Below, piece after piece: positions 11,423 to 63,494 of a DNA stretch of 64,000 nt. How positions within the stretch are numbered: position 1 is the stretch's first letter; each line of letters starts with the position of its first letter. A model generated the notes under the pieces. That model had not been told where the DNA came from. It did not search any database and saw nothing but the letters and a program-made list of their open reading frames with translations. Both the position numbers and the translations under genes were made by a program. The DNA is from Mytilus trossulus (lineage: Eukaryota): assembly GCF_036588685.1 (NCBI RefSeq), contig NC_086378.1, positions 85,994,001 through 86,058,000 of the forward strand, written 5' to 3'.

Positions 11423-11423
11423 A

Positions 11424-11590
11424 TATCGTAAAGTGGTTTTACTAAAAACTGCATGTAATAACAAAGACGTCTAAACTGTATGAATTTGTATTGAAGACTA
11501 AAGATACAATATTAACGTCATAAGAACACGACGTCCGATCTAAAATGATGGCGCGTTACGTTAACGTTCTTCTGTGCGTAATTTCTAACA
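11424..11590 (-). repeat. 5' LTR of BEL/Pao element
   Basis: Identical to 5721-5887; followed by the PBS on the minus strand. Confidence 0.95.
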
Positions 11591-20572: not shown

Positions 20573-23500
20573 TCACATGACCCCCTGTTCCATCATTCTC
20601 CATTGTTGATTGGCCATCTCACTCCCAATCTGCATTTTGGTCCACATCTTTTTATGTGTTTTAAGTGCCATCTGGAAAATAAAGATCTTCTTTGAACATA
20701 AGAATTAAAAATAGTCTAAAGTAGTATATAGCAAAACCATTGTGGGCTGGCAGCCGATTTTATTTGAGTTATTACTCTGTAACATATATACTGGGTTAAA
20801 TAGAAAAAACAAATAATTTGGCATTAATTAATTGATCAAACAGCTAGACATTTACAGCATTTCACTGATAATTTAGGTAAAATTGTGGATTTTTTTTTTG
20901 GAAGAAAACAAGAATGTGTACCAAGAACACTGATGCCCCATCCGCTCTATCATTTTCTATGTTCAGTGGACAATGAAAATGGGGTAAATACTCTAACTTG
21001 GCATTAAAATTAGAAAGATCATATCAAAGATTACTATGTTTCAAGTTGATTGGACTTCAACTTCATCAAAAACTACCTCAACCAAAAACTTTAATCTGAA
21101 GCGAGACAGACGGAGGGACGAATGAACGGACAGAGGCACAGACCAGTAAAACATTTAAAAAAAATTTTTAAGATGTTACCTCTGCAATTTCAACTTTTCT
21201 TTCCCAATTTTTGACTTTTCTCTGGATTTCATAAAGATCAGCTTTTTCTGTGACATAATCCATGACATCAGGTACTCGGAAATCTGTCAATTGTTGTCGA
21301 AGTTTACGGTTTATTTTCTCAGCTTTGGCTCGTTCCTATTAAAATATATATCATATATTTTTATCATTACCATGTTTAATAAATTATCTCCCTTTATCAT
21401 TCAACTTTTATGTAATGTTAAACTGGAAGAAAAACTAAGTCCATTTATAAGTAAAATACAAAAAAAATGGAATTTTATCTTATTTTAAATTTTCTTCTGG
21501 ATACTATCTTATGAACATAAACAAGCGTCTGTCAAAGTTTGGCAGAAATCCAGGATAGTTCAAGAAAATTATTAAAATTTCAAAAACTTTAACCACGGAG
21601 TCAGGGTTTCCGCTGGCGGTCGCCATTTTCGCAATTTGCGAAAAAATAATAATTATGGCGATTAAAATTCGTCATTGGCGAAAGAATTTGGCGAAAGAAA
21701 TATATATAACGATTTATTTTCAGCCATCTTGTTTATTTACTTTTTTTCAGGGTTTCTCTGATTTTACCAATCAGACAATACTCGGAATTCACCTTGAACT
21801 CGTTAAGCCTTTGAGAGAAAATCAATAATCAGCTGATTGCATTCATAGCTATGACATCAAAGGACTAATTAATAAAAGTGTTGAGTGTATAATATGACAA
21901 AATGATATGATTAAATGGCTTCTGTCACATGTCACAAAAGAGATTTATTAACCACTTTGCGACGCACGTGTTTGAGGCAAAATTTGTACGCTTCCTCACC
22001 TTCTTTAATAATAGTTCAGAAAAGAAATTGTTGTTATGATGAAAAATGTTTAAAAGCAAGAAAGGTCTCTGATTCAAAACTTTATCATTTAACTTTCATA
22101 TAGATCATTGATTTGAGTGGGTACTTCAAAGTCGTTTCAGTGACATGTGTTTCAAGCATATAGTTTTACTTATTTACGATGGTCTAGAAAAGAAAACTGT
22201 CGTTATGAAGAAATCTATTCAAAAGGTTGGCATGAAAGTAACCCTTCAATGTAATGACTGCACCTTACACGAGGGATCAATTCCAAGTGATAAGATGCTT
22301 CGTTTTGTTGTAAAACAACTTCTTATTTAGGGGGAGGGGGGCTAAAAAAAAGAAAATTTTTAAAAGAAAAATAAATGTGTGTTACTTGGCGATTAAAATA
22401 ATAAAGTGGCGAAAAATATATTTTTCTGGCGAAAGAGGTGGCGAAAAAAATAATTGACCCAGGGGAAACCCTGCACGGAGTGAATATATGTGGCCGCCGC
22501 CAACGGAATGTAGGATCGCTATGTCTCACTTTTTCAACTTAAGTTGAAGGCTCAACAACAATGTGTCCTTTCCAGTAAATATTATTTGTATTGTATTGTA
22601 TGTTGTCTGTACCGGTATGTATAACTTTTTGATAAAATTTTACTTTTTCTTTATATCAATATAAAAGATAGATATTATCAGCCAACCTTTCAATACTTTC
22701 ATTGTTGTATAGAAAACATTAGCTTGAGGAATCTAGGTGTCAATCAATGACATCTTATATTTTTGCATTTATATATCTGGTGCTATTTATAGTAAATCTG
22801 TTACATGTATTCACAATGTTTTCAGACTCAAGGCAATTTTGAGTTTTACTCAATGTAAAGATGCATGCCTATTATTGTTCTTAATTTTTTGGTTGCTGTC
22901 ACATTGATATATACCAATAGATATAGAAGATTTTATTGTAATCATATTATAAGCAATGGATTAAGATTTGTTCATACATCTTCTACCACTGTAGTTTCAG
23001 CATCTATCTTTGTCAATAGTTCATTCCGTGATGATATTTCCGATTTCAATCTTTCAGATTCCATTGTCAGTGTATGTAGCTTTTTCTGAAAAGATCAAAT
23101 TAAAAACACATGAATGATAAATTTATTTCAACTTTAAAAGCCATCATTCAAGTTACATCTATGCAAGTGCATATATGTATATATATCTTGAAATACAAAT
23201 TAAGTTATGATAATGAATTCTAATTACTTCCCTTTATCAGCTCTGTCACATATCATTTCCTTACTAAAATAAATTTACAAATATATAGTTCATAGATGCA
23301 TCATGGTAATAATTTTAAAATGAGAAAATGTAGAAACAAAACTCTCTTAATTTATAATTTACTAGAACAGATTTTGTTTAAGGAGGCTCAAGGATATAAT
23401 AATTTTGGAAAAAAAAATAGTTATTTTTCATTATAAATTTTATTTATTACTTTTAATATATATATGTTACTTTTTTTTTATCATATGGAACAAAAATCAT

Positions 23501-26500
23501 TCAAAATTAACAATTTGTGTTTGCCCCAGATGACTTTTAAAATGAATATATATATATATCATTGAAAAAGCTCCAAATTATCTCCCTTTGATGCAAAAAT
23601 GCTATTACTTGGCATTAAAATTAAAAATCTTTTTTTAACTCATCAGTGATCCATATTTTTTATTATCATTTTCAAATAAGCTGTATTGAAACTCAACTTT
23701 TGTAAAATTTGAGTGATTTCTGTAATTTAGTGTTTTTTTTATTTCCATATTACCTTTTTTTCTCCTTTTAGTTCAACAGAAAAAAAGTAACTTTACAAAA
23801 ATGTATGCTTCTTTCGAAGGCAGATTGTGAGCGTAAATAAATGGTGACCACATCTTTTTATTTTATTTTTCTATTGAGTAAATGATAAAGTTCATTCGTA
23901 GAAAAATATAACGAAATCCTATATTAAAATAAAATTTAACCTGAGAGCCACCTTAATTGCTTTTTTCTTAAATTTTGCCTTCATCCCTCTGTCTGATAAT
24001 TTTCCATCTCCAGCAACTCAACTGAGGTTTTTCTTCATCTGAGGAGACTGAAAACGCAATGACATCATCAACAAACATGGCCTTGGAAAATAAAAATATA
24101 TACTTGTTTCTCTGCTACATCTAATTTGAGGACCATCACCCTTGTTGAAATTGTACCCAAGAAACACCCTCTGGACTCATAGAAAATGAGTAAGCAGTCT
24201 TATATAATTGTTTACCTAATATACTCATATCTTTTATAAATGTTTATTTTAAATAAAAAAATGATTAAATTGATGACTTACTTTATATGAATTTAATACT
24301 TGTAAAGATTTACTGGCTTTTAGTTTTAGATCCATGAGTTCTGTATTTTTCTCATCAATTTTTTCTAAATACTGTTCGTTTTCAATCTTTAATTGTTGGA
24401 AGTCAACTTCATGTAATGCCTCTCCCATTTCTTCTTTCTAAAATGGAAATTTATAACAAATCCTGTAATACATGCATGTTATTTAAATCTGTATTCAATT
24501 TTACTTATAAAGCCAAGGCTCTGTGTTGAAGACTTTTGACATATTATTGTTTACATTTTACACATTGTATCTTGGACGGAGAATGGGTATGATGTTTCTT
24601 CAATTTAGGGACATTTTAAAAAATAAAAGTGATTTAAATTGACATTTAAGAGAGATGATATACAAATGCTTTTACTGTGTATCATATTTTACATTAACAT
24701 CTTCTAATAGAAATCCTTCAAAATTGTGTTAGAAATTATTACATCTTGATTGACAACCCTAATTGATATATCATTACTCTGAAATGAATAGACTGTTGCC
24801 ACAGACTCACAACAACACATGTACTGTACCTGTTTGAACTGAAGATCTAATTTCATTTTCTGTACTTTTAACTGTGAATTCTTTAGTCGTAATTTTTCCA
24901 CTAATGTGTCCTGCAATGAAATATCAAAACAATTCAGACTATTTACAATCAAACATTATTTTTTTTTAACATTCCTTACATAATTAGATACAATTCAGAA
25001 TAACCCTGGTGCCCATGAATAACACTGTGTGATCTCAGAATCTAAGTAAATTTCTTCTGTACCATTCATAAACACTTTATATTCCCATAATGCTTCACCA
25101 TATCTGAACTAATGGTCTGTTCAATTTTAGAATAGTACAAATCAAAAGTTGATAAAGTGCTGAAAATTGGAAATATTTTCCAAAACTTTGATATTTTAAA
25201 TGGTATTTTAATTTCACTAAAGAGCAAAGAATTTAACTAGAAGTTTAAACAAAACTATATACTTACACCATATACAATAGATGATATATAGTGATATCTA
25301 CCATAAATAACTAATGCAGAAAGTTAACTTGGTGTGTTCAACAAAACCAACAGTCGTCACTTACCCTGGAAAGAATTTTGTTTTCAAAATGTCTGGAAAC
25401 TTTTTCAGCTATAACTTTGCCTGTTCTCTGATTAACTGCTCCTTTCAAAATGTCTCTTTCAAATTCATAACTTTCTTTCTTGGTTTCACTCAGTGTTAAT
25501 TCACATTCTTCCATTATCGCCTGAAAATAATACAAATCATGTTTAATATAAACAATCATTCTAGTCTTCAATATTGGTGAATGTGTATAAAAGTATTCAT
25601 AAAAGTTTTATTTACCCCACTTATCCAGTGATTAAAAGAAAACTACCAAAATTTGTTCATAAGAAATGTTTCAACAAGTGAATTTGATATTGTTTGTTCG
25701 TTCAGGTAAGATAAAGAAAGAAAATAGTTTGACTTCAGTGAACATAACATATCTGAGGCTAGCTACCAACTTAAAATCTATGTACAACAGCAATTTTATG
25801 TACATGAAGTTTGCATCTTGATGAAGAATTTATTAACTTGCCTTTTTTATATACTACTGAAAGTGGAGAAAAGAATGTCAAGTTCATGAATAGCTATTGG
25901 GTACTGTGGATTCACAATTATTCTTTCGATACAAGTTTTTCGTTGATTTTGTACATGTGCTGGCACCAAAATAGATGTTCAGCTAATAACAAATTTTCTA
26001 TAGGTTTATATGCAGACTTCAGCAAAACAACAAAAATTTAAGTCTTCTTTAATCCATAAAAATGTGTACCCACTAATAAAATAAATGAATCCGCAGAAGT
26101 ATTTATTGAGACAGACAGATAAATTGACATAAATAAACTGTATCTATTTACTGTGGGTTTGATTAACTTTTTTAAGAGTGAGATCCCTTTACGTTATGTA
26201 CCCTTACAAAAAGATAAGACTCAGCTACTCTACTCAAAACACCTACTCTAAAATTGTCAATAACTCTTTCACAGTTGTCTCTGTATTTTTCTATATCTTC
26301 CTTTAGATCATCTAATTCCTTCTGGGCTATATCACATTTTTGCTCTGTTGTTAATCGAAGTGATTTGTCCAGATTAGCTCCCCTTGACTTGGATCGTTTT
26401 CTGTTCATTCCTCTTGATAGATCTTGATTAGATGATGACACTGTTAACCCAGCTCCGATCCCACCCAGTGGTCCTCCTGAATCTTTTGGTTCACTCTTCT

Positions 26501-29500
26501 TAAGATACTTTTCAAACATTTGTGTCTCATTTTGTAACACTTGGTTTTCAATCCTGAAAATATTAAATATGTGGGGTTGTGCATTAATCGGTAATATGTA
26601 TCAGCATTGACAACAACATGTATTGTTATTTGTTAAATTAAAACTGGCCAAAAACTTTTTTTCAATTTTTTTCATAATTTTTCCTTAATCCTGCATTGTG
26701 ATTCATACCACTAGCCCTGTAGCCCCAGACTGGTGGAATTCGCCTTTTCAGAATCTAAAGGACTATGGGTGATCTCTTTGTTTGTACACCAAAATGAAAA
26801 TAATGCTACGTCATTGGCTCATTTTTATTGTTTAGAACGTTTTCAACCAATCACAACGTTTTGGTGTACTCTTTTGAAAATATTACCCAGAATGCATTAG
26901 ATTCTGAAATGGTGAATTCGTTCAAACAACCGAGGTAGAAATAAACAAACTTAAACCACAGAGTGAATGTAATGTTACACAAATGTGGCTGACAGAAAAA
27001 CTAACTACATTTACAGGCGCGTAGCTCCCTATACGCCAACACGCAGTTGCGTGCACATCGATTTGGCATGCAAAATAAAATTGCAAAATAAACATTTATA
27101 AATATTTATAAATTAAATGTTTAAAGGAAACACATATGTTGTCACTTTTTTAATTGATGAAATGTCATTAAATAACGACATTTGGTTTCAAAATAGAAGT
27201 TTTATTGAATATCATGACAAAATCGGACAGTAACTTGTATCTTTTCATGCTTTTACAAGATTTGAATTTGTTATACTCAGTCTAAGACATGTAATTTCGG
27301 AGCACATTTTACAGAGTACGGTTTATCTGTTTGGAATGAGATGTACCAATCGGCATTACATTTTTCAGAACCATTCGATATCGTTAAAAATATAACACGG
27401 CGATGTGTTCGACAGACTACAGAGCCAATCACCCTGCAAACACGCCAAAACAGTATTGGAAAGTCTCATTATAATTTGCGTTTATAGACCATATGATAAT
27501 GGAACTGGAGAGTGTAGTCGCGTCTGGTATTATCAGAAAATCGCTTCTTTGTGCCGTATCTGCTGCTTCGTGTTGTAGGAAATATAACAAACTAACAAAT
27601 TTCAACATTTTCTGAGACATACGAAACTGACCTGGTATGTAATTTGACGAATTCAATTGGGAGGTCGCTCGATGGCGAATACGTACGTTGCAGGTTTATA
27701 ACATCTCGTAAGTGCTACAATGGAAATCTATCAGTGTACTACGTCTGTTGTACGATTAACAATGCACAGCTACTGGTTATCATTTCTAGCATTACTGCAT
27801 ATTCATCGGTGTTGCAGTGTTAATATTGACAAGGTAATAGAGAAGTTCGTTTTTGCCTAGACCCGAAGAGCAGATTTTGGACAATTTTTAGTAAATTCTG
27901 TATAAGAAAAATGTGTAGTTCATGTTTTCAATTAACCATGACTTACTCTATTCAGAAGCTTTATTAATAGTTTTACATTCATAAATTGTTTATAAGTCCT
28001 ATCTACATGTAGCTCCTCTTTCAACTGCCCTATAACCGAAAACCAAAAAAACAACATTTTTCTGCGTAAAAGGGCCCCAAAATTTTTTCGCCTCGCTCCG
28101 CTCGCCGTGGGTTGCTTGCACATTGTTTCTTTCTAGCTACGCCCCTGATTTATAAGTTAAATACAGAAAGACAGGATTACAAAAAAAAAAATACTTCTGG
28201 ATACTCCAATGTGAATGCATCTTATGATCAAAACAAGGTTCTGACCAGGTTTGGTAGAAATTAAGGAAAGTTAATAAATTTTCAAAAACTTTAACCACAG
28301 AGTGAACATTTTAATAGATGCCACTAATGATAACACACAGATAAGTGATTGTAAGATCACTATGTCTCCCTTTTCTACATTTTCATCGTTGAAATGCAGA
28401 GGATCACTATAAGACCCATCATGCAAGTTCTTTAGTCATTCAATATGATGCGCATTAAAAACATATATATGTGTGAAATTAAAATTAAATGTTTGTTGCG
28501 TGACTACGAGCTGTTAAATAAGATGCAAGGCTGTTCTTGTATGCCTTTGCATCTTCTATATATATTTTACAGTCATATTGGTAAGGTATATATTCCAATC
28601 TTTGATGGTGCGTGGAAAAAAGCTGTATAAATTTGTGACAAAAATTGCAAGCTCAACAAAAATTACACACTTAAATATATAAGTACAAGGGAGAAACTAC
28701 ATTAGTGTTTACAGTGCAGTCCGGTGTATCTGTGCACCGAAGACTTATGACTTCACTTAATCAACTGATAAATTACAATATTTGGATAATATTGTGTAAA
28801 CACATTCATAACATACTTTTATTTCAAAAAATCTTCTGTTTGTATGGTTTCATCCTCTAGATTTTGTGTAATGTGTGTCCAAAATTAGGGAAACTCTTTT
28901 CTGAGAGTTCCTTCAATGTCCGGTTATCCCGCGCATTCCTTCCAAAAATAGCTTATTTTATAATGGAAAGATTTTGTACTACAAAATATAGCTGAGTTTG
29001 AACCAAGCACACTGACAAGGATGCAGAGTAAAAATTAATTCAATCTGATGATGTAATTTTTTTTAATTGAATTGGCAAAATGTGGTCATGATGGTTAATC
29101 TCGGGAATGCTGTTATCAATACATCTTATCGCTATTTGTCCGCCATTACTGGACACAGGGTCCGGTAAAATTTTGACGTCACAATACAAAATATCTGATG
29201 CTTCAATGGAAAAGTGATTGTTGTATGGGTCAAAAATTCAATTAGCCGGGTCAGCTGGGATTAGCGATAAGGTGTATTAACTTTTATTCTTAAACTTATC
29301 AATTTTATTCTTTTATCTCTTTGGAAGGCTTAAACAATAAACAAGAGCGATTTGATTTGTGTTACTGTATTGATATGACAAGAACAGCTAATGCACGATA
29401 TCACTGGCTGCACGGACACCGGGGACCCTTGTCCTATAATATATGACTTCGCATTCTTATTCAATTTTTAACGTTTTTATATACTGATAATGATATTTTC

Positions 29501-30010
29501 ATCTATTTTTTCTGAATGCGAATTGCACATTGATAGTAAAAAAAAATATCAGAACAGTAAAAGTCAGTTAATAGAAATAGTAATTAATGCCCCCGAGGTC
29601 ATATGTTATAGGACTACGGGGACCCCACTGTATAATTTTTACAAGAGAGATGTCCTGCGATTAAATAGAGATACTCTGTGATCACAACAAAGATTGAAGA
29701 TACCCATTGAAAATGGAAATTTTGAGGTGGCATTTTAACATCGGAAATACACATGTATGCACGAATCCGAAGTCTACTATATTTAGATGTCACATAACGT
29801 TTCTAAAGAGTAAAGGATCATTCATTTATTGAAGATTATTCGCTGGGTGTGTATATATGGGTCGGATCCATATGGATAGCCAATTTTGTGTGTTAAATAT
29901 TACATTTTCTGTTGTATCAGTTTGTCCAGCTGTTCATCATTTAGATCCATCAGGGGATCGTCCCCAGCTTCGTTACTTGTGTCCAAACTCATACTTTCCG
30001 AGTCCGCCAT
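20573..30010 (-). CDS. CCDC113: Coiled-coil domain-containing protein 113 (CFAP263), 8 coding exons, 389 aa
   Basis: Exons (minus): 30010-29904, 26553-26247, 25520-25365, 24910-24830, 24437-24282, 23085-22978, 21335-21180, 20671-20573. All are GT-AG with consistent phase. Peptides ETQMFEKY, RSKSR..LTTEQK, EKLRLKN.LKVQ, EALHEVDFQQLKIEN and WERKVEIAEMALKTHKK match remembered human CCDC113. Confidence 0.92.
20907..21152 (-). mobile_element. DINE/Helentron-like short repeat (second family) in CCDC113 intron 7
   Basis: AAACAAGAATGTGT..GATGCCCC..AAGTTGATTGGACTTCA..AAAAACTT..GACGGA; homologous to 57640-57908 and 32461-32580. Confidence 0.7.
21602..22473. mobile_element. hAT-type non-autonomous element
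   Basis: TIR CAGGGTTTCC..GGAAACCCTG; exact 8-bp TSD CACGGAGT (21594-21601, 22474-22481); subterminal GGCGAAA repeats. It splits a Helentron-like copy. Confidence 0.88.
23382..23952. mobile_element. Kolobok-like MITE (TTAA target)
   Basis: TTAA|GGAGGCTC ... GAGCCACC|TTAA. Confidence 0.7.
25904..26096. mobile_element. Tc1/mariner-type MITE, decayed; same family as 51522-51729
   Basis: TACTGTGGATTCA ... TGAATCCGCAG; body colinear with the copy at 51522. Confidence 0.7.
26736..26919. mobile_element. Small MITE
   Basis: GAATTCGCCTTTTCAGAATCTAA..TGGGT versus ACCCAG..TTAGATTCTGAAATGGTGAATTC: imperfect ~35-bp inverted ends. Confidence 0.65.
27014..28147. mobile_element. Non-autonomous DNA transposon with 5-bp TSD
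   Basis: TIR CAGGCGCGTAGCT..AGCTACGCCCCTG; ATTTA duplicated on both sides; removing it restores a Helentron-like repeat (..CTACATTTATAAG..). Confidence 0.8.
29119..29279. mobile_element. Small MITE
   Basis: AATACATCTTATCGCTA ... TAGCGATAAGGTGTATT inverted ends. Confidence 0.7.
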
Positions 30011-30622
30011 ATTGCTTGTTTTCGTTGCTAATGGTTGACATCCGGGCACTATTGTCAATTTTTTAAGGTGGTTCTAAAATCAATATTTCAAAATCCGTAG
30101 TTGGATTTTTTTAAATGCGTTTCATATATAAAACCTTTCTAAACAGTTGGATCAGGATACCCTTTTTTGTTTGTTAATTTGTTGCGTGTTCTCAAAGAGA
30201 AAGTTTTTGATTCAATTAACTAGATATTTTTTCTCTAAAAACTTCACAATTTTTAATTATATAAATAATTATAAGAAATCATTCAACATTCTTTCAGGGC
30301 CGAAGTTTTTATTATAACATTCTCAGATTTTTTCATTAACTTTGCTGTAAAAAAGGTATTTTAGTTTTGCTCTTTTTTCATGAAGACTATGCATGTTTTG
30401 TATCTTCCTCCTTTATTAAGAGCACCACCATGGGTTATGGCGTAAATGAGGACATTTAAACACACTGTATCGGTATGCGACCATTTGATATGGTACCCAG
30501 TTTTTCAGCCCTGGCTGTGACGGGTCTTAATTACTGCCAGAAAGTTAACCTCCCCCAAATCATTCAATAAGTACAATAGATCATGATAGGAAAATGTGGC
30601 GTGAGTGCACATTAAACATACG

Positions 30623-30779
30623 CAAGGACGGATCCAGCAGTTTTCAAGGGGGATTGAGGGGTCCCAAACCAGAAAAAAAGGAAGAGTGGTTCCAACCATA
30701 TGTCCACATTCAAATACATTGATCTTCAAAAAAGCGGGGTTACACTCCCCCCCCCCCCCCCCTTCTGGATCCGCAACTG
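30623..30779. mobile_element. MITE with 5-bp TSD
   Basis: CAAGGACGGATCCAG ... CTGGATCCGCAACTG; ATACG duplicated at 30618-30622 and 30780-30784. Confidence 0.75.
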
Positions 30780-31009
30780 ATACGAACCTGATTGGCTAGT
30801 CCAATAAAAAAAGAGACATATAATCATTTGTTATGTAGTAGTCTGTATATGTCTCTGGTTCTGCTAAGTTGTGCATGATTAAAACTTAAAACGTAATGGT
30901 TATATATTGTTTACAGCTTTATATGTATAAAATAAGAGATATGAATCGCAATTATGCATAGAGTGCCTGCATGAGTGTTTAGATAACAGAATCTCAGTGC
31001 CATACGGGA

Positions 31010-31500
31010 AGGTTCGGCCACAGTTGTTTTGGCCATTCAACCAGTTTAGGCAAACTTTGTTAGTCGTTTCGGCCATGCCAACAACCAGTTCGGGCAAACT
31101 TTGTACTAGAGTCGTTTCGGTCATACTACCAGTTCGGCCAAACTTTGTGTTGTCGTTTTGGTCATAAGTGTCGTGCATTTTTGCCACGCATTGATCTTAA
31201 AGTCGTGAATAGTAGTCTTGAATTGCCCGGCCAGTGACTAAGTATTTAGAACAGAACCCCCAAAGACGTTTCGGTCGCGGATATTTCGGCAATACTAACA
31301 TTTCGGACAAACTTTGTTAGTCGTTTCGGCCATAGTTGTTTCGGCCAAACTTTGTTAGTCGTTTCGGCCATAGTTGTTTCGGCCAAACTTTGTTAGTCGT
31401 TTTTGACCAATCTTTGTAAGTCGTTTCGGTTATAGTTATTTCGGCCAAACTTTGTTAGTCGTATCGGCCATATATTTTGTTAAGTCGTTGTGGCAAAATT
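31010..31500. repeat. Minisatellite (~37-38 bp; GGCCAAACTTTGTTAGTCGTTTCGGCCATAGTTGTTTC), probably internal to a TE
   Basis: Two blocks (31010-31190 and 31300-31500) of CAAACTTTGTTAGTCGTTTCGG repeats. Confidence 0.8.
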
Positions 31501-31786
31501 GGCAGTTCTGCAGCTTTAAATAACGTAAAATAAATAGAATATGTGGTATGATTGCCAATGAAACAAATTGATATAGAAATTATCAACTTTATAAATCACC
31601 TAAATGCTTTCAATAATGAGAAAAGGCTATACCGCATGGTCAGCTATAAATCCACACCTTGAATTCCAAACTGTATAATTACTTACAAAATGACTTGTAT
31701 ATATCATCGTAACAGTTCATTTGTGTCTTGCTTCATGCAGCTGTACCTACAGTTATATGTTTACTGTATTCAAAGTTTATTATATA

Positions 31787-33504
31787 CTAGAACACACCCG
31801 CGAAATCGCGGGTATATACAGCTTGTAGATTGTTGTAGGATATTTTTTTTTTGTAAAAGATAGTATGTATGGGAAATTTCATTAAAGGTATCAACAGCCT
31901 TCTCCCTTGTTCAAAAGTCCGATATTTGTTTCCTATCTGTTAAATTCAAATATTTTCGTGTGTCTGGCCACAGACCAAAATTATTATCCTCCTTTGCTAC
32001 AATGCTGCTTTTGGTAAAAGTCAAATAAAATTAACAATTTGCACCGTTTCAAACATGAAATAAATCTAACTGCTTATATATAGACCATTATTAGTCTAAT
32101 AAAATATGCTTCTAGGACAATCCGTGTTTTTTTTTCATTTGAGAGCCTCACTAAGATGTCAATGGTAGGATATGCATCATGTATAAATGACTAAGGCTAA
32201 TTTGAGGGGTGGTCGGAGGGGTCCTGGTCCCGAAATCCCGCGCTTAAAACCATGAAATCCAGAGATGCAGAATTAAAAGAAATGCATATCCCGAAATCAC
32301 GAAATCGAAAAATATATTCCCGGATCCAGTAAGGATCAATCCCCAAATCCCGAGCTTAAAAACACACGATCCCGACGCCCCGAAAAATGCTCGCCTACTT
32401 TTAATCTCTACATTACTTTCATTTTTGCCAAATCACTATTTTCCCTTTCAACAATACATTTTTTATGCCCCATTTATGGGCATAATGTTTTCAGGCTAGT
32501 CTGTCCGTCCGTCCGTCCGTCCATGTCTGTCCCGCTTCAGGTTAAAGTTTTTGGTCGAGGTAGTTTTAGATGAAGTTAAGCATGTTTTACTTATTTTAAC
32601 ATATATGCAAGTGGTATGACCCCTTAAGTAGTAAACATTTCAAAGAAAACAGTAGAAAGAATCAGGGCCGACATTCTATACTAACATAAAAAGTCCCTGA
32701 CAGAATACAGATAGTCTCTATATATTGAAGTAGTATAATCGTAGTTTACATGTAGATAAACGCGAAAAATAATTATCTTCTCTAAGGAGGTATAATAGTT
32801 GTGGTTCTTGCGATCTAAACACCGTGATATGAAACGCGAAAAGTAATTGTCCTCTCTAAGGAGGTATAATAGTTGTGATTATTGCGATCTAAACACCATG
32901 ATATGGAGAACGCTTTGAATGGCTTATTTTTTTCTCTCCATTTTTTTTTATCCATCATACGATTGGTTGTACTTGTGTCAAATATTTTAATTATTTTAAT
33001 AGATATATATATACAACTGGTATGACCCCTTAAAAAGTAAACATTTCAAAGAAAACAGTAGACAGAATACAGAGAGTCTCCATATATTAAAGTATCATAA
33101 TCGTAGTTTACATATAGATAAACACGAAAAATAATTATTGTCCTCTATAAGGAGGTAATAATAGATGTGGTTCATGCGATCTAAGCCCCATGCTATGGTG
33201 AACGCTCTGATTGGCTTATTTATTTTTCATAATTTAGTTATCTATCATACGATTGGTTGTATTTGTGCATCTTTCAAACCGGAAATCTAATCTATGATTT
33301 AAAGTTAGTCCGATGATGGATTCATATCCGGACTCCTTTTTTGTCGTTTTTCTCCCAAAATAACTCAATCTGAATAATCATAAAAATGGATGACAAATGC
33401 GACTATGCATGTTACCTGTAGGACACAGAGGCATGATGATTGATTTATTGTGGAAGGAAGAGAAGCGACACCCAAAATGAGGTCTTCTCGTTTAATAGTA
33501 TAGA
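31787..33504 (-). mobile_element. Non-autonomous Helitron
   Basis: Minus strand starts A|TCTATACTATTAAACGAGAAG and ends with hairpin ACCCGCGATTTCGCGGGT + GTGTTCTAG|T. These are canonical TC...CTAG termini at an AT site with no TSD. Confidence 0.85.
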
Positions 33505-34392
33505 TCTAAATTAATGAGTCGTATTCAACCTGAACGCACCAGATAAAAATATATACCACTTTAGCGCATGTTGTCGCTAAAATGAGATGCAAATCCCAAT
33601 GGCAAATAATTGCAGAAAATAATATTGAGTCAGTTAATGCAAACTTTAAGGCTGTCAAACCCTTAAACTATTATTTGCATTATCTATAACATCAAGGGAG
33701 GCAAATACAATTGTTCCTAGAATAAAAAAAAATAGAAAGTACGTTATAAACAAGATATATTATATATACAATGTTACAGGCATTTTCTAAATTTAGGCAT
33801 TTTGTAAAATGACTGAATTTTTAGGCATTTTCTAAAATGCCTAAAGTTGACAGGCATTTTGTAAAATGCCTAAAAAAACCTAGTCATTTTGTAAAATGCC
33901 TGAAATTTTTAATAAAAATTTTACAAATTGCCTGATCTGTTTCAGGCAAATTGTGTAAATATGAAATACATGAAATAGAACATAAAAAAATAGTGTAAAG
34001 GTACAAAAAGGGTCGAGTAAAATAAATTTAAGATTATTCTTTAAAAAAATTAACAAGAAAATCTGTAGGTTTCTAAGACATGTAGGAGCCTGAATTGCTC
34101 ATCTTGCAAAATATTGAAAATAAAAGTATAATACACTTAAGGGACATTTTAACAATTGGTTAAGTAAAAAATAAAAAGGACATAATCACATATGAAGATT
34201 GAGTTGACGACTTCTGTTACCATTAAGTTGCCTCATAGGTCAATAATTGAATATGCATGAAATATTTGCCACTTGAAAAGCATGCGCCATTCAATGTCTG
34301 ATACTATCACTTGTTATCTGTGTTCAAATGGAAGAGGTTATCAAAAATGAAAGAAGGTATGCATCAGACTCAATGACAAAACAAGCTGTAAG

Positions 34393-35636: not shown

Positions 35637-35640
35637 TAAG

Positions 35641-41159: not shown

Positions 41160-52709
<11,550 letters not shown>

Positions 52710-53459
52710 TGCTATATATGTCTGCTTGGGCTTGATACGTGTCTATTGTGATAACTAAAACTTTGCCATCAGCTACAGGGAACGCCTGGTGATGATGACG
52801 AATATTTATTAGTGAGCTGGTGTTGTGTCGACTTAATGCAAATTGTGATGACCTGAACAAATCAACAGGGCAATAGCAATACAAAGATAAACATGTCATT
52901 TGTTCACCTGTTATCATTCATATTATAGGGTAACGATACTCGCCCAGCGGCAAAACTGTTTCTTCTCAAATATATTAGTCATGTTTCTGACAGCTAAATA
53001 AGACATTTTAATTGTTTTATTGAATAAAGAACTATTTTTTTGCCAAAAAAGATTGAAAGAAAAGATGTCAACTTTCTTACTTTTTATCATTAATCATAAG
53101 TAGTGGTTTGAAAAATGGGGTTAAATCATTTAAGATATAGATTATTTTGTTTTTTTACTTTTTCACATAATACATGATATTAAATGAATGGAAAGATAAT
53201 ATTGTCTCTTGAACAGCATTGTTTATGTCAATTAGTTTGTTCATTTATGATGTATGTTTTGTTTGATGATTTTATAATTTATGTCTTGACAAGTGCTAAA
53301 ATTGAACCTGATATTTTCTGTTTTTATTTGAAGTAAAAGAAACTTATTAAGATTAAATATATTCCCAAGCATAATTGAAAAGAGGTGTAGCAAAATACTG
53401 ATATGGGCTGTATAATGTTTAATAAATAAATAGTAGGTAGGGAAAATGTAATAAATACT

Positions 53460-53473
53460 GTTGCCATAGAAAC
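53460..53473. promoter_or_regulatory. Candidate RFX X-box
   Basis: GTTGCCATAGAAAC, close to the palindromic X-box GTTGCCATGGCAAC; motif match only. Confidence 0.35.
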
Positions 53474-56400
53474 AAATATTGGTGCAAAGCTTTATACACA
53501 ACTGTCTAACAGGTGCTATCTTGTGAGCATCTGGGAAAGGTTTGATTTACAGAGCTGTTGAGAAAAGTGAGAGGCAATGTGTCCAGTAAGATGTATGCAT
53601 TGGCAGCTTCTTCTAGGTTCTTACTAGACTTGATATTTCACTGTTAAAAACAGTACACCTGTTGTTAGACATAAGGCTGGGCCATCAATTGCTTGACCTT
53701 TGAAAATTCTACACATGTTTAACATCTGATTATATTTAGTCTAAAAGATATTTATTTTCATACCAATGTCTTTTTAAAACTGTTTTCTGGGAATGTTTGG
53801 TAAACATGTTAGATAAAAAATTTGATACATCATTTAATAATGAATTTGAATAACACCCTTTAAACTGAATGCAGATATCAAATATAAATTTTATATGGCG
53901 GTCAATATTGAATCCATATCAATTATAAAAAGAGATTGTTGAGATTTGATAAGGTTTTAGATATTGCCAAAGCCGTGTTATGTACACTTTAGTATGTACT
54001 TAAACAAGTTTAATGCTGCTGTGTTCATGTAATACAGAGTTTTGGTTTTGATCGACTACAACCATTACCGTTTTTGATATCATCTGACATGGACGGCTGA
54101 TACATAATGATAGCCATTGTATAACTTCACCAGAATGTACAACTAGGTATATTATAAAGCTTGGAAGACAGGAATGTTTTAGGTACAATGAATTTATGAA
54201 TGTAAAGGTATTATTACTAATTATGATTTTAATTGCTGTTATATAATATTGTAAAGCAGGTCTCATTGGAATTATAATGTCTTTCAGTTTACAATGTATA
54301 GTTTATCATCACTGTATCGTCTGACTCTCACAGATCTGTTTTCATATAAATATTCTCATCATGTTGTTTATGGCTGGTTAATATCTGCATCAGAAAAGAA
54401 CATTCACATTAGCATTCGACTGTACAAATTGAGTCTAATATATGCTGACTAAAAGTCACTTTTATGATAACGGGTCTCAGGAGAAATGCATAAATGTCTT
54501 CATACAATGAGGTTATTGAAAAATAAATGATTTAAATAATAAAAAAACAAATCATATTATAAATATAGCAAGAGAGACCAGCCTCCAGGGAAAAATCATA
54601 TGAAGGTGCATTTATTGATGAAGATTATCATTAACATTGCTGTTATGATGTATTTGTGACAGTTGAGTGAGACTCCAAAGATCCTTACAAAGAAAGTTTG
54701 ATTAGCTCTAAGCTGGCATCACATAAATGTTCAACATTGTTCTTAAAGTGTTTAATTAAAGATAATAACAAACATCAGTCATACTGTGTATGCTAAGATA
54801 CACTTATGGTGCTGTCATTGTCCGAAGCACAACCTTTTGGTATAGATCTGAAATCTTTTTTGGCAATTATTTAAAATCAACACATCAGTGTATGTGTCAG
54901 TCAAAGGACCTTGAATGGATAATCTCAATGACTCAAATTCTCCTTCACAAATATTGTGCTTGGAGAAAACAGCTTTAACAATATATTCTATATAAAATTA
55001 TGTATTTACATCATGGTGAACAATTATATTGTCAGTATTAGAATATCCTGTGAAAAAGTACTTCAAATAAGGTTATTGTCTCTTTTAATTCAGTGGTGAC
55101 AAGTTGTTAATTTTTTGAATGATTGCTCTGTTTTTTCATAATTTACTGTTTTGTTAATTATTTCCATCTTACCTAATTTAATTTTTTCACATGTTGCCCC
55201 AGAAATGAGAGTTGTCCTTTTATTTTTTATTGTCATGTGGAAAAAGGGATTCAGTTTATTTCTTGTTGTAGACAAATTTTTCTTTTGATATTTCACTTGT
55301 GTTATTAGTTTCTTTTGTCTTGTTTACATGAAATTTCATTTGTATAAAACATTAAACCATGTGTATTTACAATTAATTTGAAATTGCTTTTGATCAAATA
55401 TGTCTAGAAAAAAGACAGTTCAGTTAAGTAAGTTTAAATGTGATATGTTTTTTGTATTGTTCATTTGTGAAATGAATATGAAATGAATTTGTCTACAACA
55501 ACAGAATGTTTATTTCAATCTGAAGTTGTCTCCCATGTAGATATTGCAAGGGAGATAATTATGAATATTTTCTCCCTTTCTTTATAAAAGTTTAAATTTG
55601 AGATGACTGGTTGAAGATTTATAATTTGATTCTGGTGCGTGTCATATCATAGAATACTTTTATATGTAAAGGTAGATGAACTAGCTGTGGTTCATGTCTA
55701 CCTATTGCCAAGTCAAATATGAAACATTTAATAAAGTTCACTCTTGTTTTTTATGGCCAAACTTTGAAGTTGATGAATAGTCCTAAAAATAATATGACTG
55801 TAATAAAAGGTACACAATAATGTTGAGAAATCAAATTAGAAAAACCATGAAAAAAGGTATGAATTTCTTGTAGTACTATTAAGCTGTGGAAACATTACAC
55901 ATGGTCATTATGAGTTGATGCAAACTTTTATTAGATGTGCCAACTAAGGATATTGCCAATTTGGCCCAGATTTAGTGATCATTGAGCATGGAAAGTATAA
56001 TTAGATGTGAAGTACTTGTCTAGGTATAGTGGGGTTTGTGAATACTAATGCATGTATTTAAATGCTTTCTTCTCACAAATTGAACGGTAGAGCACACGAT
56101 GTCTGAGTGGTAAAATTATCCTTCAACTTAAATGAGACATTTAAGTCCGACTAGTCTAAAACAATTTACAATGAGACATCAGCTGGTAAAATCTGCTAAG
56201 TGGATTGAAAAATGGGATCATTGGTTGTAGGAATTTGCGATACAACAGTTGCCTATTAGCAGCCTATCGACAGACTTTAGATAGATATAGGAAGATGTGG
56301 TGTGAGTGCCAATGAGACAACTCTCCATCCAAATAACAATTTAAAAAGTAAACCATTATAGACCATTGATATGAGTCTTCAACAAGCAATGTCCATGACA

Positions 56401-57639
56401 TTTCGAAACATGGGCTATAGAAGCAAAGGTAGATTCGATTTTTAGCAAAAACAAATTTTGCTGTTGTATAATGGTATCACGTCTGCATCGTCTGAAGACA
56501 CTCAGTTTCCAAACAATAACTTAAACTCTGAAATTTAAACACAAGGTTTAAAACCACAGATGGAAGGCTTGGATTAAAGGGGTTAAGGACCTAAAAAGGT
56601 GTCCAAATATTTTTCTAGTTTCCAGACAATAACTTGTGTGCAAGTGTATGAATCTTTCTGAAATTGTACCACAAAGGTTCCATACTAAATAAAGAAGGTA
56701 AGGATTTATTTTGGGGGCTTTGGTCCTAACTGTTGAGGAATTTAGGGCAAAAAAAACCAAACTTTTCTTATACCTTGAATTAATTGCATATCATGACCAA
56801 TTTCAATGGGGTTTTATTCTTAGAGGTTCTTTAATATGCTAAACCTAATCATGTTTTTAGATATTGGATCTTGATTGGTTTGTTTAAAAAAAAAAAGTTC
56901 TTGGACCACATTCATTATGACAGAAACCTATGCTGTGACAAATATTTAATCACAATCCAAATCCAAAGCTGTATCAAGCTTGAATGTTATGTCAATACTT
57001 GATCCAAGTGTTCAGGGTTCGACCTATGCGGTCGTATCAAGCTGCACCATGTGGAGCATTTTATGTCTGCAATAGTGCGGCAAAAACAGAACTGAGGTCA
57101 CATTGCAGATATACTAAACAACAGCAGTCAATTTCGAGAAAAAAGATAATTATAGTACATATATTCTTGAAGTATTAAAGATTTTAATTGAATAACGAGA
57201 CAAGTTTTTCCATGTAACAATTAAAAAGTTCATTGCAGCTAATGATTAACAAAAATATACAAAAAATAATGCGTTGCATGCACGCCAATAAAGACGAAAA
57301 TGATGTAGTAGCTAGCAACTTTGGGTCAATGTACAGCCTGCAACAATAAAAGAAAAACAACACTGCATGGCAAGAAATAAAAAAATGAAATGACAATCGT
57401 AAGGGAGCTAGGATGTTTTTGGAAACGAAAAGGTAGGACAGCAGGTTTGAGTGAGAAAAAAATACGCTGGATGACAAGTTATGTAAAAACAAGTCGAGAC
57501 AAAGATTTCACAACTTAAAAAGGCTGAATAAAAAAATCATAACACCCAAAAAAAATCAATTGTGGAATGGAAGGTGGTGAGTGGTGTTGCAAGGTATTTT
57601 TTTTTCTTTCTTTTATCATTTTTGAGGTAAAATAAATAA

Positions 57640-57908
57640 AAACAAGAATGTGTCCCAAGTACACGGATGCCCCGCTGGCACTATAATTTCCATGTTCCAT
57701 GGACCGTAAAATTGGGGTCAAAAGTCTAATTTGGCTTTAAAATTAGAAATATGTCATAAGCATCAAGTGTACTAAGTTTCAAGTTGATTGGACTTCAGCT
57801 TCATCAAAAACTACCTTGACCAAAAACTTATACCTGCGGACGAACGAACAAACGGAGCCACAGACCAGAAAACATAATGCCCCTCTACTATCGTAGGTGG
57901 GGCATAAA
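57640..57908 (-). mobile_element. DINE/Helentron-like short element, apparently complete
   Basis: AAAACAAGAATGTGTCC..GGATGCCCC ... ATGCCCCTCTACTATCGTAGGTGGGGCATAAAAA; terminal hairpin, GACGAACGAAC microsatellite and A-run flanks. Confidence 0.72.
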
Positions 57909-59139
57909 AATTAGGATTTTTAAACGTTCGATCACCTTTCGATGTGCCTAATTGACACCAACCTGACACAATGAACAACTTCGTGAACCCTAATTTGTTC
58001 TCAATCATAATGTCATAATTTGACACGACTCAATCTTTACAATGAAAATAAATGTTACAGCGTAGTCTCGCGTGAGTCTTGCATTTAAAGCAAAAAAATA
58101 TGCGATAATCTATGCCAGGATAGGAGAGATTTTGGAAAAGTTTTTATTTATTTTTAAATAAATGAAAAATATTTTTTTCATATTAGTTGTTGTGAAGTGC
58201 ATTTACAATCCTTTTAGAATTTTTTGTCTATATTTTGCATTGTACTAAACAAAAACCTACATCCTTTTGATTCTGTTCAAATTCGTGCAATTGAAAATCC
58301 CCGTGTATACTTGATATACATTTGGAAAAACATCCATCTTTGTGTAATAGAATAAAAGTTTTAGAGTAACACAATCACCCGAGTAAAAAAATGAAAATGA
58401 GAAAAAATACATGATGTCTGACTAGCTACACAGTGGCATGGGTGGATTACAGAACGAATGATACGTTAATGTTTTAAAATGCACTAGATGCGTATTTCGA
58501 CAAATAACGAACAAAATTATTAAAAAAAGATCGAAAGGGACCAAACAAGTATATCGCCAAAACCGACCAAGGAATCAGAGCTTTGCATGAGGGAGAATTA
58601 TTCCTTTATAGTTTCCCAAATTCATGACCGTAAATATTATTTAAGCAATATCAGTATTTTTCAGCAAGTACCAAAGTAATGGGCCACTAAGCTGGTGATA
58701 TCTCGGCGAACACGGCAAACATACATGAAATATTTGCAACTGGACATTAAGCAAACAACAATCATACAATCTGAATTGTCGCATAACCGTGACATGCTAA
58801 TCATCCAGGTTCTCTGTAAATGTATGCGTGCCTATAATTCTTTCATCCACTTCATTTCAACTTTGGTGGATAGTTGTATCATTGGCGATCATACCACATC
58901 TCCATATTTTCATAAAAATGGTCAACCCTATTAATATTGGATTGGTTGTGATTAGTACGTGCTCATATTATGGACAAAGAGTCTTCTCCTTATGTATATA
59001 GATGCTTAAATCGCTGGATATTGTACCAAAAAGTTACTGTTTGCTAATTAAAGTCCTATGTTAGATTATTTTGAGATGCTTAAATAAAACCCGAGACTTA
59101 TATACATCTGCATACATTTCTATGTTTGAAAAAGATGGA

Positions 59140-59805
59140 ATAAGGCCGGGTTCGCGGAACCCAGTTTCTCGCCTACTAGTTATTGCTGTAAATCGCAGGC
59201 TCAACGAAAATGAGGAAAAAAATCAATAAAAATATTTCTCTTGATACTATCTTTTGATCGTAAGGAGCATCTGCCAAAGTTTGGTAAATATCCAGATTAG
59301 TTTATAAATCTAATAAATGTTTTAAAAACTTTAACTGCAGACTGTATATCATGTTAACTGGAAGAAAAGTCCATTTATTAGTAAAATATAGATACACAGA
59401 AACAAAATTTTAACAAAATTTCCTTCTAGATTCTAATAAGTCAAGTTTTGTCCAAGTTTGGTACAAATTCAAAAATATTAAGAAAAATGTTAAAATTTTA
59501 AAAACTTTAATCACAGAATGAATGTAATGTTTCCCCAGAGAGAAAAACGAAGTCCATTTATGATGTAAAATAAGGAAAAAATGGAATTTTATTTTTACAA
59601 AATTTACTCTTGGATTCTATTTAATGATCATAAACAAGCCTTTTATCCAAGGTTGGTAGAAATCCAGTATAGTGTAAGAAAGTGATTAAAACTTAAAAAA
59701 TCTTTAACCACAGAGTGAATATTTGTGGACGCCGCCGCCACCGACGGAATGTAGGATCGATAATTGTCTCGTTTTTTTTCGACTAAAAGTCGAAGGACGA
59801 CAAAA
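59140..59805 (-). mobile_element. Helentron-like element, inverted copy of 18176-18915
   Basis: Reverse-complement match from CGCGGAACCCAG..CTCGCCTAC to CGGAATGTAGGATCG..TCGACTAAAAGTCGAAGG. Confidence 0.8.
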
Positions 59806-60881
59806 AGGAACATTATAAAAGAAAAATGAACTTCATCCTCAACATCATCAGAATAACATCTGTCGCATATTATTACTTCATAAAGCACATTTGGATTTAT
59901 ATATCGCCAAGTTTCTTCTTTGTGACTTGCGATTACTTATTCTGATTTTTGAATATTGTACACAAGATATTTATTTTTACGTTAAAATACGTTGCTATTG
60001 GATATTACAAACTGCATCAATATGTGATGAGCTTTCTCAATCCGCTACTTTTTAAATTTATTGTAATAAAAGTTGGCAAGGCTTGCGTATTCTTCTGATC
60101 TTTTAATTCAAATACACGGTAATTTGATTATTGCAATTATATTTCTTTAACGGTCCCAGTGCCACGAAGTCATTATACATATCAATAGTAGTCCATTGGT
60201 TGATGTTGGTAAGGATTTAATGTATACTTTACAATTGATATATATCAGTTTCTTTTATTAATCAGACCCCCTCCCCCCAATAAAAAAACAAACGGCATAT
60301 TCTACACTAGGCATTATATAGACGGATGGCGAGTACTAACCTTACTCCAAGGTGTTTACTCTGGTTCGCCATTATTTTCTATCAATGGACCACTAAACAT
60401 TTTACAGCACTCAATCTTCTACATTTTTTTTATGTTAAAAAGGTAATTTAAAAGTTAAAAAATACGGGGAAAATAAATCATTTTTTTTTAGTAAACAGTA
60501 TACTTTGACATGAAATTATTTGGTCAAACACCTATTTTATTTACCTGTTGTAAATATCAAGACCATTTTTTTTTAAATCTGATTCCACAAATTACTTTAG
60601 TTGTTGATATTCACAAAAACAAAAATACAAATGAGTGTAAAACAACGAATGATCAATGTAAATAAAACCACGTGTGTCGTCTACTCGCTACAACAGAAGT
60701 ACTAAGCGTGCCACTACATATATCACTACTCCAAATCCATATATTGAAATATCTTTTTAATTAAGGCATGACATCGGTTGAAACTTTCTGGTAATATTTA
60801 AACTGCATTATTTATACAAATAAATTAAAAGAATATTAATAATATATGTGTTTATACTAATTTTCAATATAGTTCCCTAGC

Positions 60882-60896
60882 GTCACACGTAGCAAC
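60882..60896. promoter_or_regulatory. Candidate RFX X-box upstream of CFAP20
   Basis: GTCACACGTAGCAAC fits GTNRCC-N0-3-RGYAAC with one mismatch, ~170 bp before the ATG of a ciliary gene. Confidence 0.4.
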
Positions 60897-61063
60897 TAAA
60901 ACCAAGCGCGACCGTATCGCCACCCTTGACAACTTCTCTAACTTAACCGACACACAACTGAACCTTCACTTGACAACTGTCCACCACGAGAGAAGGAGCG
61001 TATTAGTGTGCTGTCCAGGAGGACTAAGAACTTAGAATTTTTTCACTATTATAGACAATAACA

Positions 61064-63494
61064 ATGTTCAAGAATACATTTCAAAGTGGATTCTTATCCA
61101 TACTTTACAGTATTGGAAGTAAACCGTTACAAATTTGGGACAAAAAGGTAAGTTATTTTCATTCTACACACCGGTTGTCATTACCATAGTGATACATTGA
61201 TGTCAACATGAAAACCTTTAACTTCATCTAATAATAACATGACAGTATTCTTAACTTGCTTCACAATAAGTTAAATATTATATGGGGTAATCATCAGATT
61301 TCTATTTCGAAAAATTAAGGCATTTGACAAGCAAGAAACTTTATTTTTGTTGACACACGGAAGTGCACGTGTAAACAACTTACAATTGTTTGAATGATAT
61401 ACTTTATACACAAATATTTTAAATTTATACACTACCATCGTGGTTTATGGTGTCGGAAGTTCACAATTATTATTTTTTTCAAAGTAATGTCACTTTTAGT
61501 AGCCATATGTGATGTTGATGTTTATGAAGATGGAGATGTTTGTCATCTCGCTTCATTGAATTCTATGTCATTATTTTCATTCAATTGCACATTAACGAAC
61601 AGTTTATAAGAAAAACATTACTAGTTAATGATAAATTAAGTATGTTATATAATTTTGCATGGAGTTAGACCTCCGTTGCCAAGATAGTATTTTGTTTCCT
61701 GATCATCAACATCATGGCCGCCATTTGCATTCTAATAGACAATATTATAACATCATGTTATTCTCGTTTTAGGTTAGAAATGGTCATATTAAACGTATAA
61801 CAGACAACGATATCCAGTCCTTAGTTTTAGAAATTGTTGGAACAAATGTCAGGTATGTACTTAATCAACAATAAACAATTATTTCTTTGTTTTGAAAAAA
61901 GAGATAATTTTGAATTATCTCCCTTTAGTTACATCTATGGTAACACATAATCAAACACAAATATACATGCATTTTGTTATTTAATGAGACAAATATAGCT
62001 TACTTTCATTTAATGCAATTAAAATTATTCCTATTTATACAAAGCATAACATATTCATTTTAATTAAGTTAAATTCTGCATCTTATATTATTTTAAGCAT
62101 CTTTATTATGTCAGGTGTTATTTGCAGTGATTCTGTAACACAATAATACTTGATACCTGTAACCAATTTTGAAACTATTTCCTATAAAATGCTAATCTTT
62201 TTAATTTTTGATGCTGTAAGTGTTAAGATTATTTGTTCTTGCAACATAACAAGTTTGAAAAAATTTTCTACAAGTATATAAATGCCCATTTTATATTAAA
62301 TCTTGTATGTTCATTGGCTGAATTTTAGAATTAATTATTGAACGAACATGCTTAATATTTCTAGTTACAAATGTAGCGGTATGAATAATATGTTGATATT
62401 TCCCTTTTCTATTTATAGCACAACATACATCACATGTCCAGCAGACCCAAAGAAAACATTAGGAATTAAACTTCCATTCTTAGTTATGATCATCAAGAAC
62501 TTAAAGAAATATTTCACATTTGAAGTACAGGTAAGAATGTAACAATTATATTTTTTATTTAAAGTATACCTAAAAATGTTAAATATGTAATTCTTTCAAT
62601 ACCATTCAATATAAGCATGACATGTGAATATATTAAATGAAGGAACTTATCTTGACAAAAAAACCATGTTACTTTAAAAGAACACATTGGAATTCTGTTT
62701 AGTATATGAAATATAAAAAAATGAAAACACAAATGTGCATAGTTCTTCAAATGTTTTTTTATTGTTTCTGTTGCAATTTAGTAATATAAGTGACCAGTCA
62801 ATAGACAATGGCTTAACCATGATGATCCTTTTATAACTTTTCTTTATTTAATATTTAAGGTCTTAGATGACAAAAATGTGAGACGAAGATTCAGAGCTAG
62901 TAACTACCAAAGTACAACACGTGTAAAACCATTTATATGTACTATGCCAATGAGGTTAGATGATGGATGGAATCAAATTCAATTCAACTTGTCAGATTTC
63001 ACAAGGAGAGCCTATGGAACAAATTACATTGAAACACTTAGAGTACAGGTTAGTATTGTATTGATTACTTGTCTAACAATATGTATAAATCAGGTTATAT
63101 TGTCACAATCTTATCTTTAAACTTGAGGTTAAGGTCTAGGATATTATGGTCAAATAAAATAATATATTGTACCACACAAACAAATAGTTACTTTATTTTA
63201 CATGAACAATTAAGAAATTGGTCCTCTTCAGGAAATAGTGTAACAAAGAATTGAGAGATGGTAGCCTTTCAACACTTTTATAACAAAACTTTTGATGTAC
63301 AGTTTTGCATTTTCCATACCCATTTATTACAGTGATATTCTGATATTTATTGTTCCTATTTCTTTTTTCAGATTCATGCCAATTGTCGAATTCGTAGAGT
63401 TTACTTCTCAGACAGACTATATTCAGAAGATGAATTACCTGCAGAATTTAAATTATACCTTCCGGTGCAAAATAAAGGAGGCGTGAAAGCATAA
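61064..63494 (+). CDS. CFAP20: Cilia- and flagella-associated protein 20 (BUG22/GTL3), 5 exons, 195 aa
   Basis: Exons: 61064-61147, 61773-61852, 62419-62530, 62860-63048, 63372-63494. Translation [130 protein letters not shown] is near-identical to known CFAP20. Confidence 0.97.

Follow-up and report, generated by a model that had tools for sequence, protein, structure and literature searches.

We analysed a 64,000-nt window of a mussel genome (positions 85994001-86058000 of contig C6, a 91.4-Mb sequence that makes up about 7% of the 1.30-Gb Mytilus assembly), in which three genes stand side by side: CCDC113 (CFAP263) on the minus strand, the gene of the casein kinase II catalytic subunit (CK2α) head-to-head with it on the plus strand, and CFAP20 next on the plus strand. 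The neighbourhood is genuine and of great age, and it belongs to a well-known kind. An earlier note, made from the letters of this DNA alone, had proposed that the block is ancient, and the proposal is supported here by a metagenome contig with the same order and orientation and by the same order in cattle and pig. Since the agreement spans a protostome, the mammals and a further deep lineage, the simple reading is that all inherited the block from a common ancestor no younger than that of molluscs and vertebrates. On balance we consider it probable that the triplet is a conserved microsyntenic block in which each gene is a transcription unit of its own, and that it was kept by compact packing around the essential CK2α gene.

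The three genes of the mussel window

The coordinates and strands of the three genes were confirmed (Table 1), and exon matches together with Pfam domains support the names given to them in the earlier note. Gene models were compared exon by exon, and the orthology calls given below rest on these exon matches.

Table 1. Positions of the three genes, their spacers and associated features in the mussel window and in the metagenome contig L072
Sequence	Feature	Position	Strand	Details
Window	CCDC113/CFAP263 coding region	30010 to 20573	minus	ATG 30010-30008, stop 20575-20573
Window	CCDC113, eight coding exons	~29903-30010, 26241-26537, 25359-25526, 24815-24901, 24279-24437, 22978-23088, 21174-21335, 20573-20672	minus	
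Window	Divergent spacer CCDC113/CK2α	30011-41159		11,149 bp between start codons; much of it young interspersed repeats
Window	Young dispersed repeats in divergent spacer	31785-33505, 34393-35636, 37398-39048		copies 90-99% identical on many contigs
Window	Reverse-transcriptase open reading frame	38571-39365	minus	PF00078 RVT_1, E 1e-22; overlaps repeat 37398-39048
Window	CK2α coding region	41160-52709	plus	ATG 41160, stop 52707-52709
Window	CK2α, first six of twelve coding exons	~41160-41255, 44562-44672, 45218-45319, 45915-45965, 46464-46525, 46799-46882	plus	
Window	CK2α, last six of twelve coding exons	~47525-47635, 48337-48438, 48772-48870, 49747-49897, 50771-50863, 52599-52709	plus	
Window	CK2α-CFAP20 spacer	52710-60837		8.1 kb; CK2α 3' side and intergenic DNA
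Window	Repeats in CK2α-CFAP20 spacer	57640-57910, 59148-59809		copies 80-84% identical
Window	CFAP20 transcript	60838 to past 63500	plus	ATG 61064, stop end 63494; 3' untranslated region continues
Window	Imperfect X-box-like (RFX-type) motif	60882-60902	plus	at CFAP20 5' end
Window	CFAP20, five coding exons	61064-61147, 61773-61852, 62419-62530, 62860-63048, 63372-63494	plus	sum 588 nt, in frame
L072	CCDC113	1463-3257	minus	
L072	CK2α	from 4190	plus	tail exon 6168-6260
L072	CFAP20	7268 to ~8300	plus	

The exons of CCDC113 were placed by reading open reading frames (ORFs) and by tblastn with the L072 orthologue, and their borders are approximate except for the ATG and the stop codon. Two of them match the CCDC113_CCDC96 coiled-coil domain (PF13870), scoring 56 and 47 bits (cut-off 31.6). 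When three exons were compared with proteins of solved structure (phmmer, PDB), the best match was each time human CCDC113 (8j07_i2), and the matches fall in collinear order on residues 40-130 (2.5e-12), 210-262 (5e-15) and 298-350 (1.6e-12) of its 377 residues. CCDC96, compared with the same exons, reached 2e-7 for the exon matching both proteins and was otherwise absent. Judged by these matches, the window gene is the orthologue of CCDC113, being closer to it than to CCDC96 and collinear with it along the protein. A second PF13870 locus was found in the genome at C7:36.795 Mb, and it is likely the CCDC96 orthologue.

Concerning CK2α, ten core exons (to 49897) are collinear with CK2α proteins by tblastn. 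Identity to the CK2α proteins of animals is 85-95% across the exons, and over five of them it is 95% to CK2α of Dreissena. Two tail exons rich in Ser, Thr and Pro, with AG/GT borders, are predicted at 50771-50863 and 52599-52709, either as alternatives or one after the other, and the first of the two has a counterpart in L072. A six-frame search of the whole genome found no second CK2α gene, all other matches being at most 41% identical. The mussel CK2α is single-copy and the sole catalytic CK2 gene of the genome; it must therefore cover all CK2 functions and be broadly expressed, and it cannot be cilia-specific. The same search brought up tandem arrays of intronless kinase-like ORFs (270-289 aa, 28-29% identical to the CK2α core) at C3:16.309-16.365 Mb (about 30 copies), C4:20.130-20.150 Mb (about 11) and C1:26.001-26.028 Mb (about 15), with a period of about 1.89 kb on C3 and C4 and about 1.7 kb on C1.

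For CFAP20, a protein of the axonemal inner junction, the CFA20 domain (PF05018) was recognised above the Pfam cut-off in four exon matches, which cover positions 1-30 and 53-184 of the profile (best 98.6 bits), and the remaining exon was recovered through ORF reading and RNA joints. Exon 4 matches the solved bovine, human, Chlamydomonas and Tetrahymena CFAP20 chains with E-values from 1e-35 to 2e-39 (residues 93-155). By sequence, then, the window gene is the CFAP20 orthologue and not a paralogue with a CFAP20 domain. A weaker second CFAP20-domain locus, at C7:29.155 Mb, is likely CFAP20DC-like. This locus and the second CCDC113/CCDC96-domain locus share C7, 7.6 Mb apart, which may be a coincidence.

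Spliced RNA contigs from four public runs were placed on one 6-kb stretch holding CFAP20. All four introns of the gene are of the GT..AG type, each joint is present in spliced contigs of all four runs, and single RNA contigs of 1301 and 1502 nt cover all the exons. The 5' ends of the spliced contigs lie at 60838-61026 (about 60.84-61.03 kb), and the region 59.9-60.9 kb is nearly free of RNA contigs. No RNA contig of the four runs joins CFAP20 to CK2α in this stretch, and transcripts joining neighbours, as expected of an operon-like arrangement, were thus not found on the CFAP20/CK2α side. CFAP20 is its own transcription unit with its own start.

In the two spacers no further host gene was found between the three genes, as the earlier note had reported, only transposon debris; besides the reverse transcriptase, the ten longest spacer ORFs carry no Pfam domain, and a small intron-rich host gene could escape such an ORF-based search. 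The heavy turnover of transposable elements proposed for the spacers is also borne out, by the reverse-transcriptase fragment and by repeats with copies 80-99% identical. Short tandem repeats are present in the divergent spacer as well. The 11 kb of young repeats between CCDC113 and CK2α implies that the two genes have no shared core promoter in the mussel: a bidirectional promoter would call for divergent starts within about 1 kb of each other, and here the distance is 11,149 bp.

One of the repeats on the other side, at 57640-57910, reached a summed RNA-contig depth of 1e4-1e5 in all four runs, against tens to thousands for the exons of CFAP20. A tRNA gene was sought at these positions and none was found; the element resembles a transcribed and very abundant repeat of the mussel.

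The block in a second invertebrate and in mammals

The contig L072 (ERZ1740065 NODE_2616) is a metagenome contig of 11.2 kb with a G+C content of 0.43, which was obtained from a scan with exon 4 of CFAP20. Its three genes have the order and both orientations (minus, plus, plus) of the window, so that relative orientation is conserved between the two, and the whole block takes up about 6.9 kb. The divergent pair, CCDC113 and CK2α, has its start codons about 0.93 kb apart, and from the last CK2α coding exon found it is no more than about 1 kb to the start of CFAP20. In a comparison of 53 CCDC113 residues the identity is 72% between L072 and Mytilus, 66% between L072 and human and 64% between Mytilus and human, while CK2α of L072 is about 88-91% identical to that of every bilaterian tested. 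From the identities of these two genes it follows that L072 is a separate deep lineage and not a close relative of Mytilus; by this measure the marine animal is about equally far from Mytilus and from mammals. Taken by itself, CK2α identity does not tell the phyla apart. Downstream, at 8581-9408 on the minus strand and convergent with CFAP20, lies a K/E-rich ORF of 275 aa with a sub-threshold match to CCDC34 (E 0.002). Its relatives are all unnamed, and no counterpart was found within 30 kb past the mussel CFAP20.

Among about a dozen other metagenome CFAP20 loci with 3.5-10 kb of upstream DNA, none has CK2α, which was found only in L072; these other loci are probably from protists and are uninformative about animals. 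A scan of bacterial and archaeal genome bins returned two eukaryote-contaminant contigs with CFAP20, neither of which has CK2α beside it. The 1.72-Mb contig CAXXVR010000009.1 (L100), placed in an uncultured Desulfobacterium bin, carries a CFAP20 gene at a G+C content of 0.23 and is eukaryote DNA in a bacterial bin.

In mammals the three genes are again adjacent. The order on cattle chromosome 18 is USB1, MMP15, CFAP20, CSNK2A2, CCDC113, PRSS54, GINS3 (PMC7057717), and that on pig chromosome 6, GINS3, CCDC113, CSNK2A2, CFAP20, MMP15, agrees with it (PMC8227816). A human locus from a genome-wide association study, at chr16:58,253,460, is labelled CSNK2A2/CCDC113 (PMC11245064). The earlier note had claimed a match to human 16q21 in both order and orientation: the order is supported by the cattle and pig lists and by the label of the human locus, and the orientation of the human genes is presumably the same.

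To compare the block with its surroundings, six single-copy neighbours were chosen from the cattle and pig lists, the human copies of which lie, we presume, within about 1.3 Mb of the triplet. All six are on C6, namely KATNB1 at 9.3, CNOT1 at 12.9, COQ9 at 56.6, NDRG at 68.3, USB1 at 71.5 and CIAPIN1 at 90.5 Mb. With the triplet at 86.0 Mb, they are from 4.5 to 77 Mb away from it. The chance of finding six of six on a contig holding 7% of the genome is about 1e-7, and the controls map to other contigs: CK2β to C2, and the CCDC96-like locus and the second CFAP20-domain locus to C7. From this analysis it is evident that the chromosome is orthologous and that its gene order has been thoroughly shuffled, with the triplet as an island in which the order was kept. 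The block is therefore better conserved than what surrounds it.

The immediate flanks in the mussel differ from the mammalian ones. Past the 3' end of CCDC113 the next host gene is marked by exons of an SLC6-type sodium:neurotransmitter transporter (minus strand, C6:85.964-85.990 Mb), and in the 30 kb examined beyond CFAP20 we found only repeats and a transposase-like ORF. The G+C content of the window is about 0.31. The earlier note had made its inference conditional on a molluscan host, and the host is indeed Mytilus: the BEL/Pao polyprotein encoded intact at 6011-11464 shares 97% identity with a protein of Mytilus trossulus, and the named relatives that follow are from bivalves. The element that holds it (5716-11595) is abutted by a satellite array of 74/147-bp units, about 6.5 kb long (11591-18131).

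A full-text search of a paper library found no paper discussing this CCDC113-CK2α-CFAP20 synteny, although the triplet may already be present in published supplementary lists of conserved pairs.

Packing, neutral survival or shared function

In the reading that we favour, CK2α would have been flanked by two axonemal genes, CCDC113 head-to-head and CFAP20 tail-to-head downstream, since at least the ancestor of molluscs and vertebrates. The ancestral state was likely compact, as it is in L072. In such a form the promoters and untranslated regions of the three genes would abut or overlap, and almost any breakpoint would harm either the essential gene or the promoter of a neighbour; the genes would have been kept together because almost no harmless breakpoint was available around CK2α. 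The order would then have been carried along as transposons enlarged the spacers, which now measure 11 and 8 kb in Mytilus and tens of kb in mammals. During this growth, which would have happened not to break the block, the rest of the chromosome was presumably shuffled. We infer that the genes were held together by their packing and by entangled cis-regulation, and not by a shared function.

Several points weigh against this reading. The block has been seen in three lineages only, Mytilus, L072 and, through published papers, mammals. The strands of human CCDC113, CSNK2A2 and CFAP20, which we take to be oriented as in the block, are a weak point. The spacers of L072 and Mytilus share no non-coding conservation beyond 10-14-mers at chance level. 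Finally, the large repeat-filled spacers offer many harmless breakpoints, yet the order held; this fits selection, and it also fits luck in slowly rearranging genomes.

The serious rival is neutral survival, according to which no break has yet fallen between these ancestral neighbours in lineages that rearrange slowly, and their linkage is not selected. We regard it as possible, though on the unlikely side. Irimia et al. (2012, Genome Res 22:2356; PMC3514665) listed 600 conserved pairs in human and 448-492 retained in the mollusc Lottia, mostly head-to-head, and by a rough calculation an adjacency survival of about 6% would leave dozens of two-adjacency triplets genome-wide. The lack of conserved non-coding sequence between L072 and Mytilus and the separate transcription units of the genes agree with neutrality as well. 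However, local order has otherwise been lost, all six tested mammalian neighbours being dispersed over 80 Mb of the same chromosome, and the block persists in a third deep lineage with both orientations retained along with the order. Published randomisations, moreover, give about 0.015 conserved pairs by chance (PMC3514665).

A constraint of shared function is improbable in our judgement. It would place the axonemal genes and CK2α in one regulatory or chromatin domain, inherited from an ancestor in which the block was compact and CCDC113 and CK2α shared a bidirectional promoter; following the genome duplications of vertebrates, this domain would have steered the retained copy, CSNK2A2, to expression in testis and ciliated tissue. 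Were this true, an ancient gene order would be tied to the sperm role of CK2α'.

We are slightly more doubtful still about the stronger proposal of the earlier note, a co-regulated motile-cilia/sperm module with shared regulation, in which the pathway of the two flanking genes is a target of CK2α. CFAP20 and CCDC113 chains are indeed present in solved axonemes (PMC7987202, PMC11643634), and conserved head-to-head pairs are generally enriched for co-expression (PMC3514665). In L072, CCDC113 and CK2α start only about 0.93 kb from each other, which is compatible with a bidirectional promoter and leaves room for one in a compact ancestor. Furthermore, the vertebrate paralogue that retains the neighbourhood, CSNK2A2, is presumably the testis-enriched one. 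Against the module stand the sole, and hence broadly expressed, CK2α, the own 5' end of CFAP20 with no link to CK2α transcripts, and the 11.1 kb of young repeats that split the divergent pair in the mussel, and on these grounds the proposal is not supported. CK2 is, in addition, unmentioned in the CCDC113-focused literature found by our search. The sperm phenotype of CK2α', which had been brought forward as support, belongs to a paralogue restricted to vertebrates and not to the single mussel CK2α. The defect in mouse, moreover, is mainly one of sperm head shape and not of the axoneme.

The RFX binding motif may be a further point against the module. A search for the strict X-box (GTNRCC N0-3 RGYAAC) gave no match at the three starts, either in the window or in L072. 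The imperfect X-box-like motif at the 5' end of CFAP20, with its X-box resemblance at 60882-60896, shares an 11-mer with L072 7179-7189, at chance level (BLAST E 1.8) and of value as a lead only. Another such motif lies near the start of CCDC113, at 30024-30039, and has look-alikes in L072 that are not above chance. If real, these motifs would point to a separate cilia-type promoter for each ciliary gene.

That the same order arose independently, by convergence, in the mussel, L072 and the mammals, or that it is an artefact of assembly or annotation, is very improbable. This reading is listed because only three lineages have been seen, and nothing speaks positively for it. The window and L072, which come from unrelated assemblies, are identical in order and in both orientations, the CFAP20 part of the mussel assembly is confirmed by spliced RNA contigs, and the orthology with the mammalian region at the scale of the chromosome favours common descent.

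Significance and comparison with known systems

As the evidence stands, the triplet is one further example among the hundreds of catalogued conserved pairs of molluscs and vertebrates. It is of practical use as a synteny anchor in deciding CCDC113 versus CCDC96 orthology, and it marks the mussel chromosome equivalent to the mammalian 16q21-type segment. Its meaning would be wider under a constraint on the linkage: for more than half a billion years an essential housekeeping kinase would have stayed fixed between two structural genes of tissue-specific use, and the locus would allow a natural test of the influence of gene order on how the duplicates CK2α and CK2α' divide their tasks.

In a genomic regulatory block, a developmental gene is accompanied by bystander genes that carry its enhancers. 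The triplet resembles such blocks in that a housekeeping gene is locked beside tissue-specific genes over a long evolutionary time. It differs in that none of the three genes is a developmental transcription factor or signalling gene, and the introns of CK2α give no evidence of conserved non-coding elements.

The closest likeness is to the conserved pairs of Irimia et al., called CAMPs (PMC3514665). As in these, genes that are unrelated to each other are adjacent in a mollusc and in vertebrates, in slowly evolving genomes and with the surrounding order lost, and the head-to-head pair of the triplet has the commonest CAMP orientation. Two differences should be noted, however: the block is known from three lineages, whereas four or more major lineages were required for a CAMP, and the mussel head-to-head pair is 11 kb apart, whereas less than 1 kb marks bidirectional promoters (PMC3514665).

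The mammalian 16q21-type segment (cattle chromosome 18 and pig chromosome 6) has the three genes side by side, in the order of the mussel. Past CCDC113, however, the mussel has an SLC6-type transporter, and USB1, NDRG, CNOT1 and others are megabases away. The kinase gene differs too, the mammalian one being the CK2α' paralogue, while the mussel CK2α predates that duplication. Concerning the ancestral linkage groups (Simakov et al. 2022, PMC8809688), the finding of all six mammalian neighbours on one chromosome-scale contig of the mussel is of the same kind; macrosynteny, however, keeps membership of a chromosome, whereas the triplet has kept order and orientation as well.

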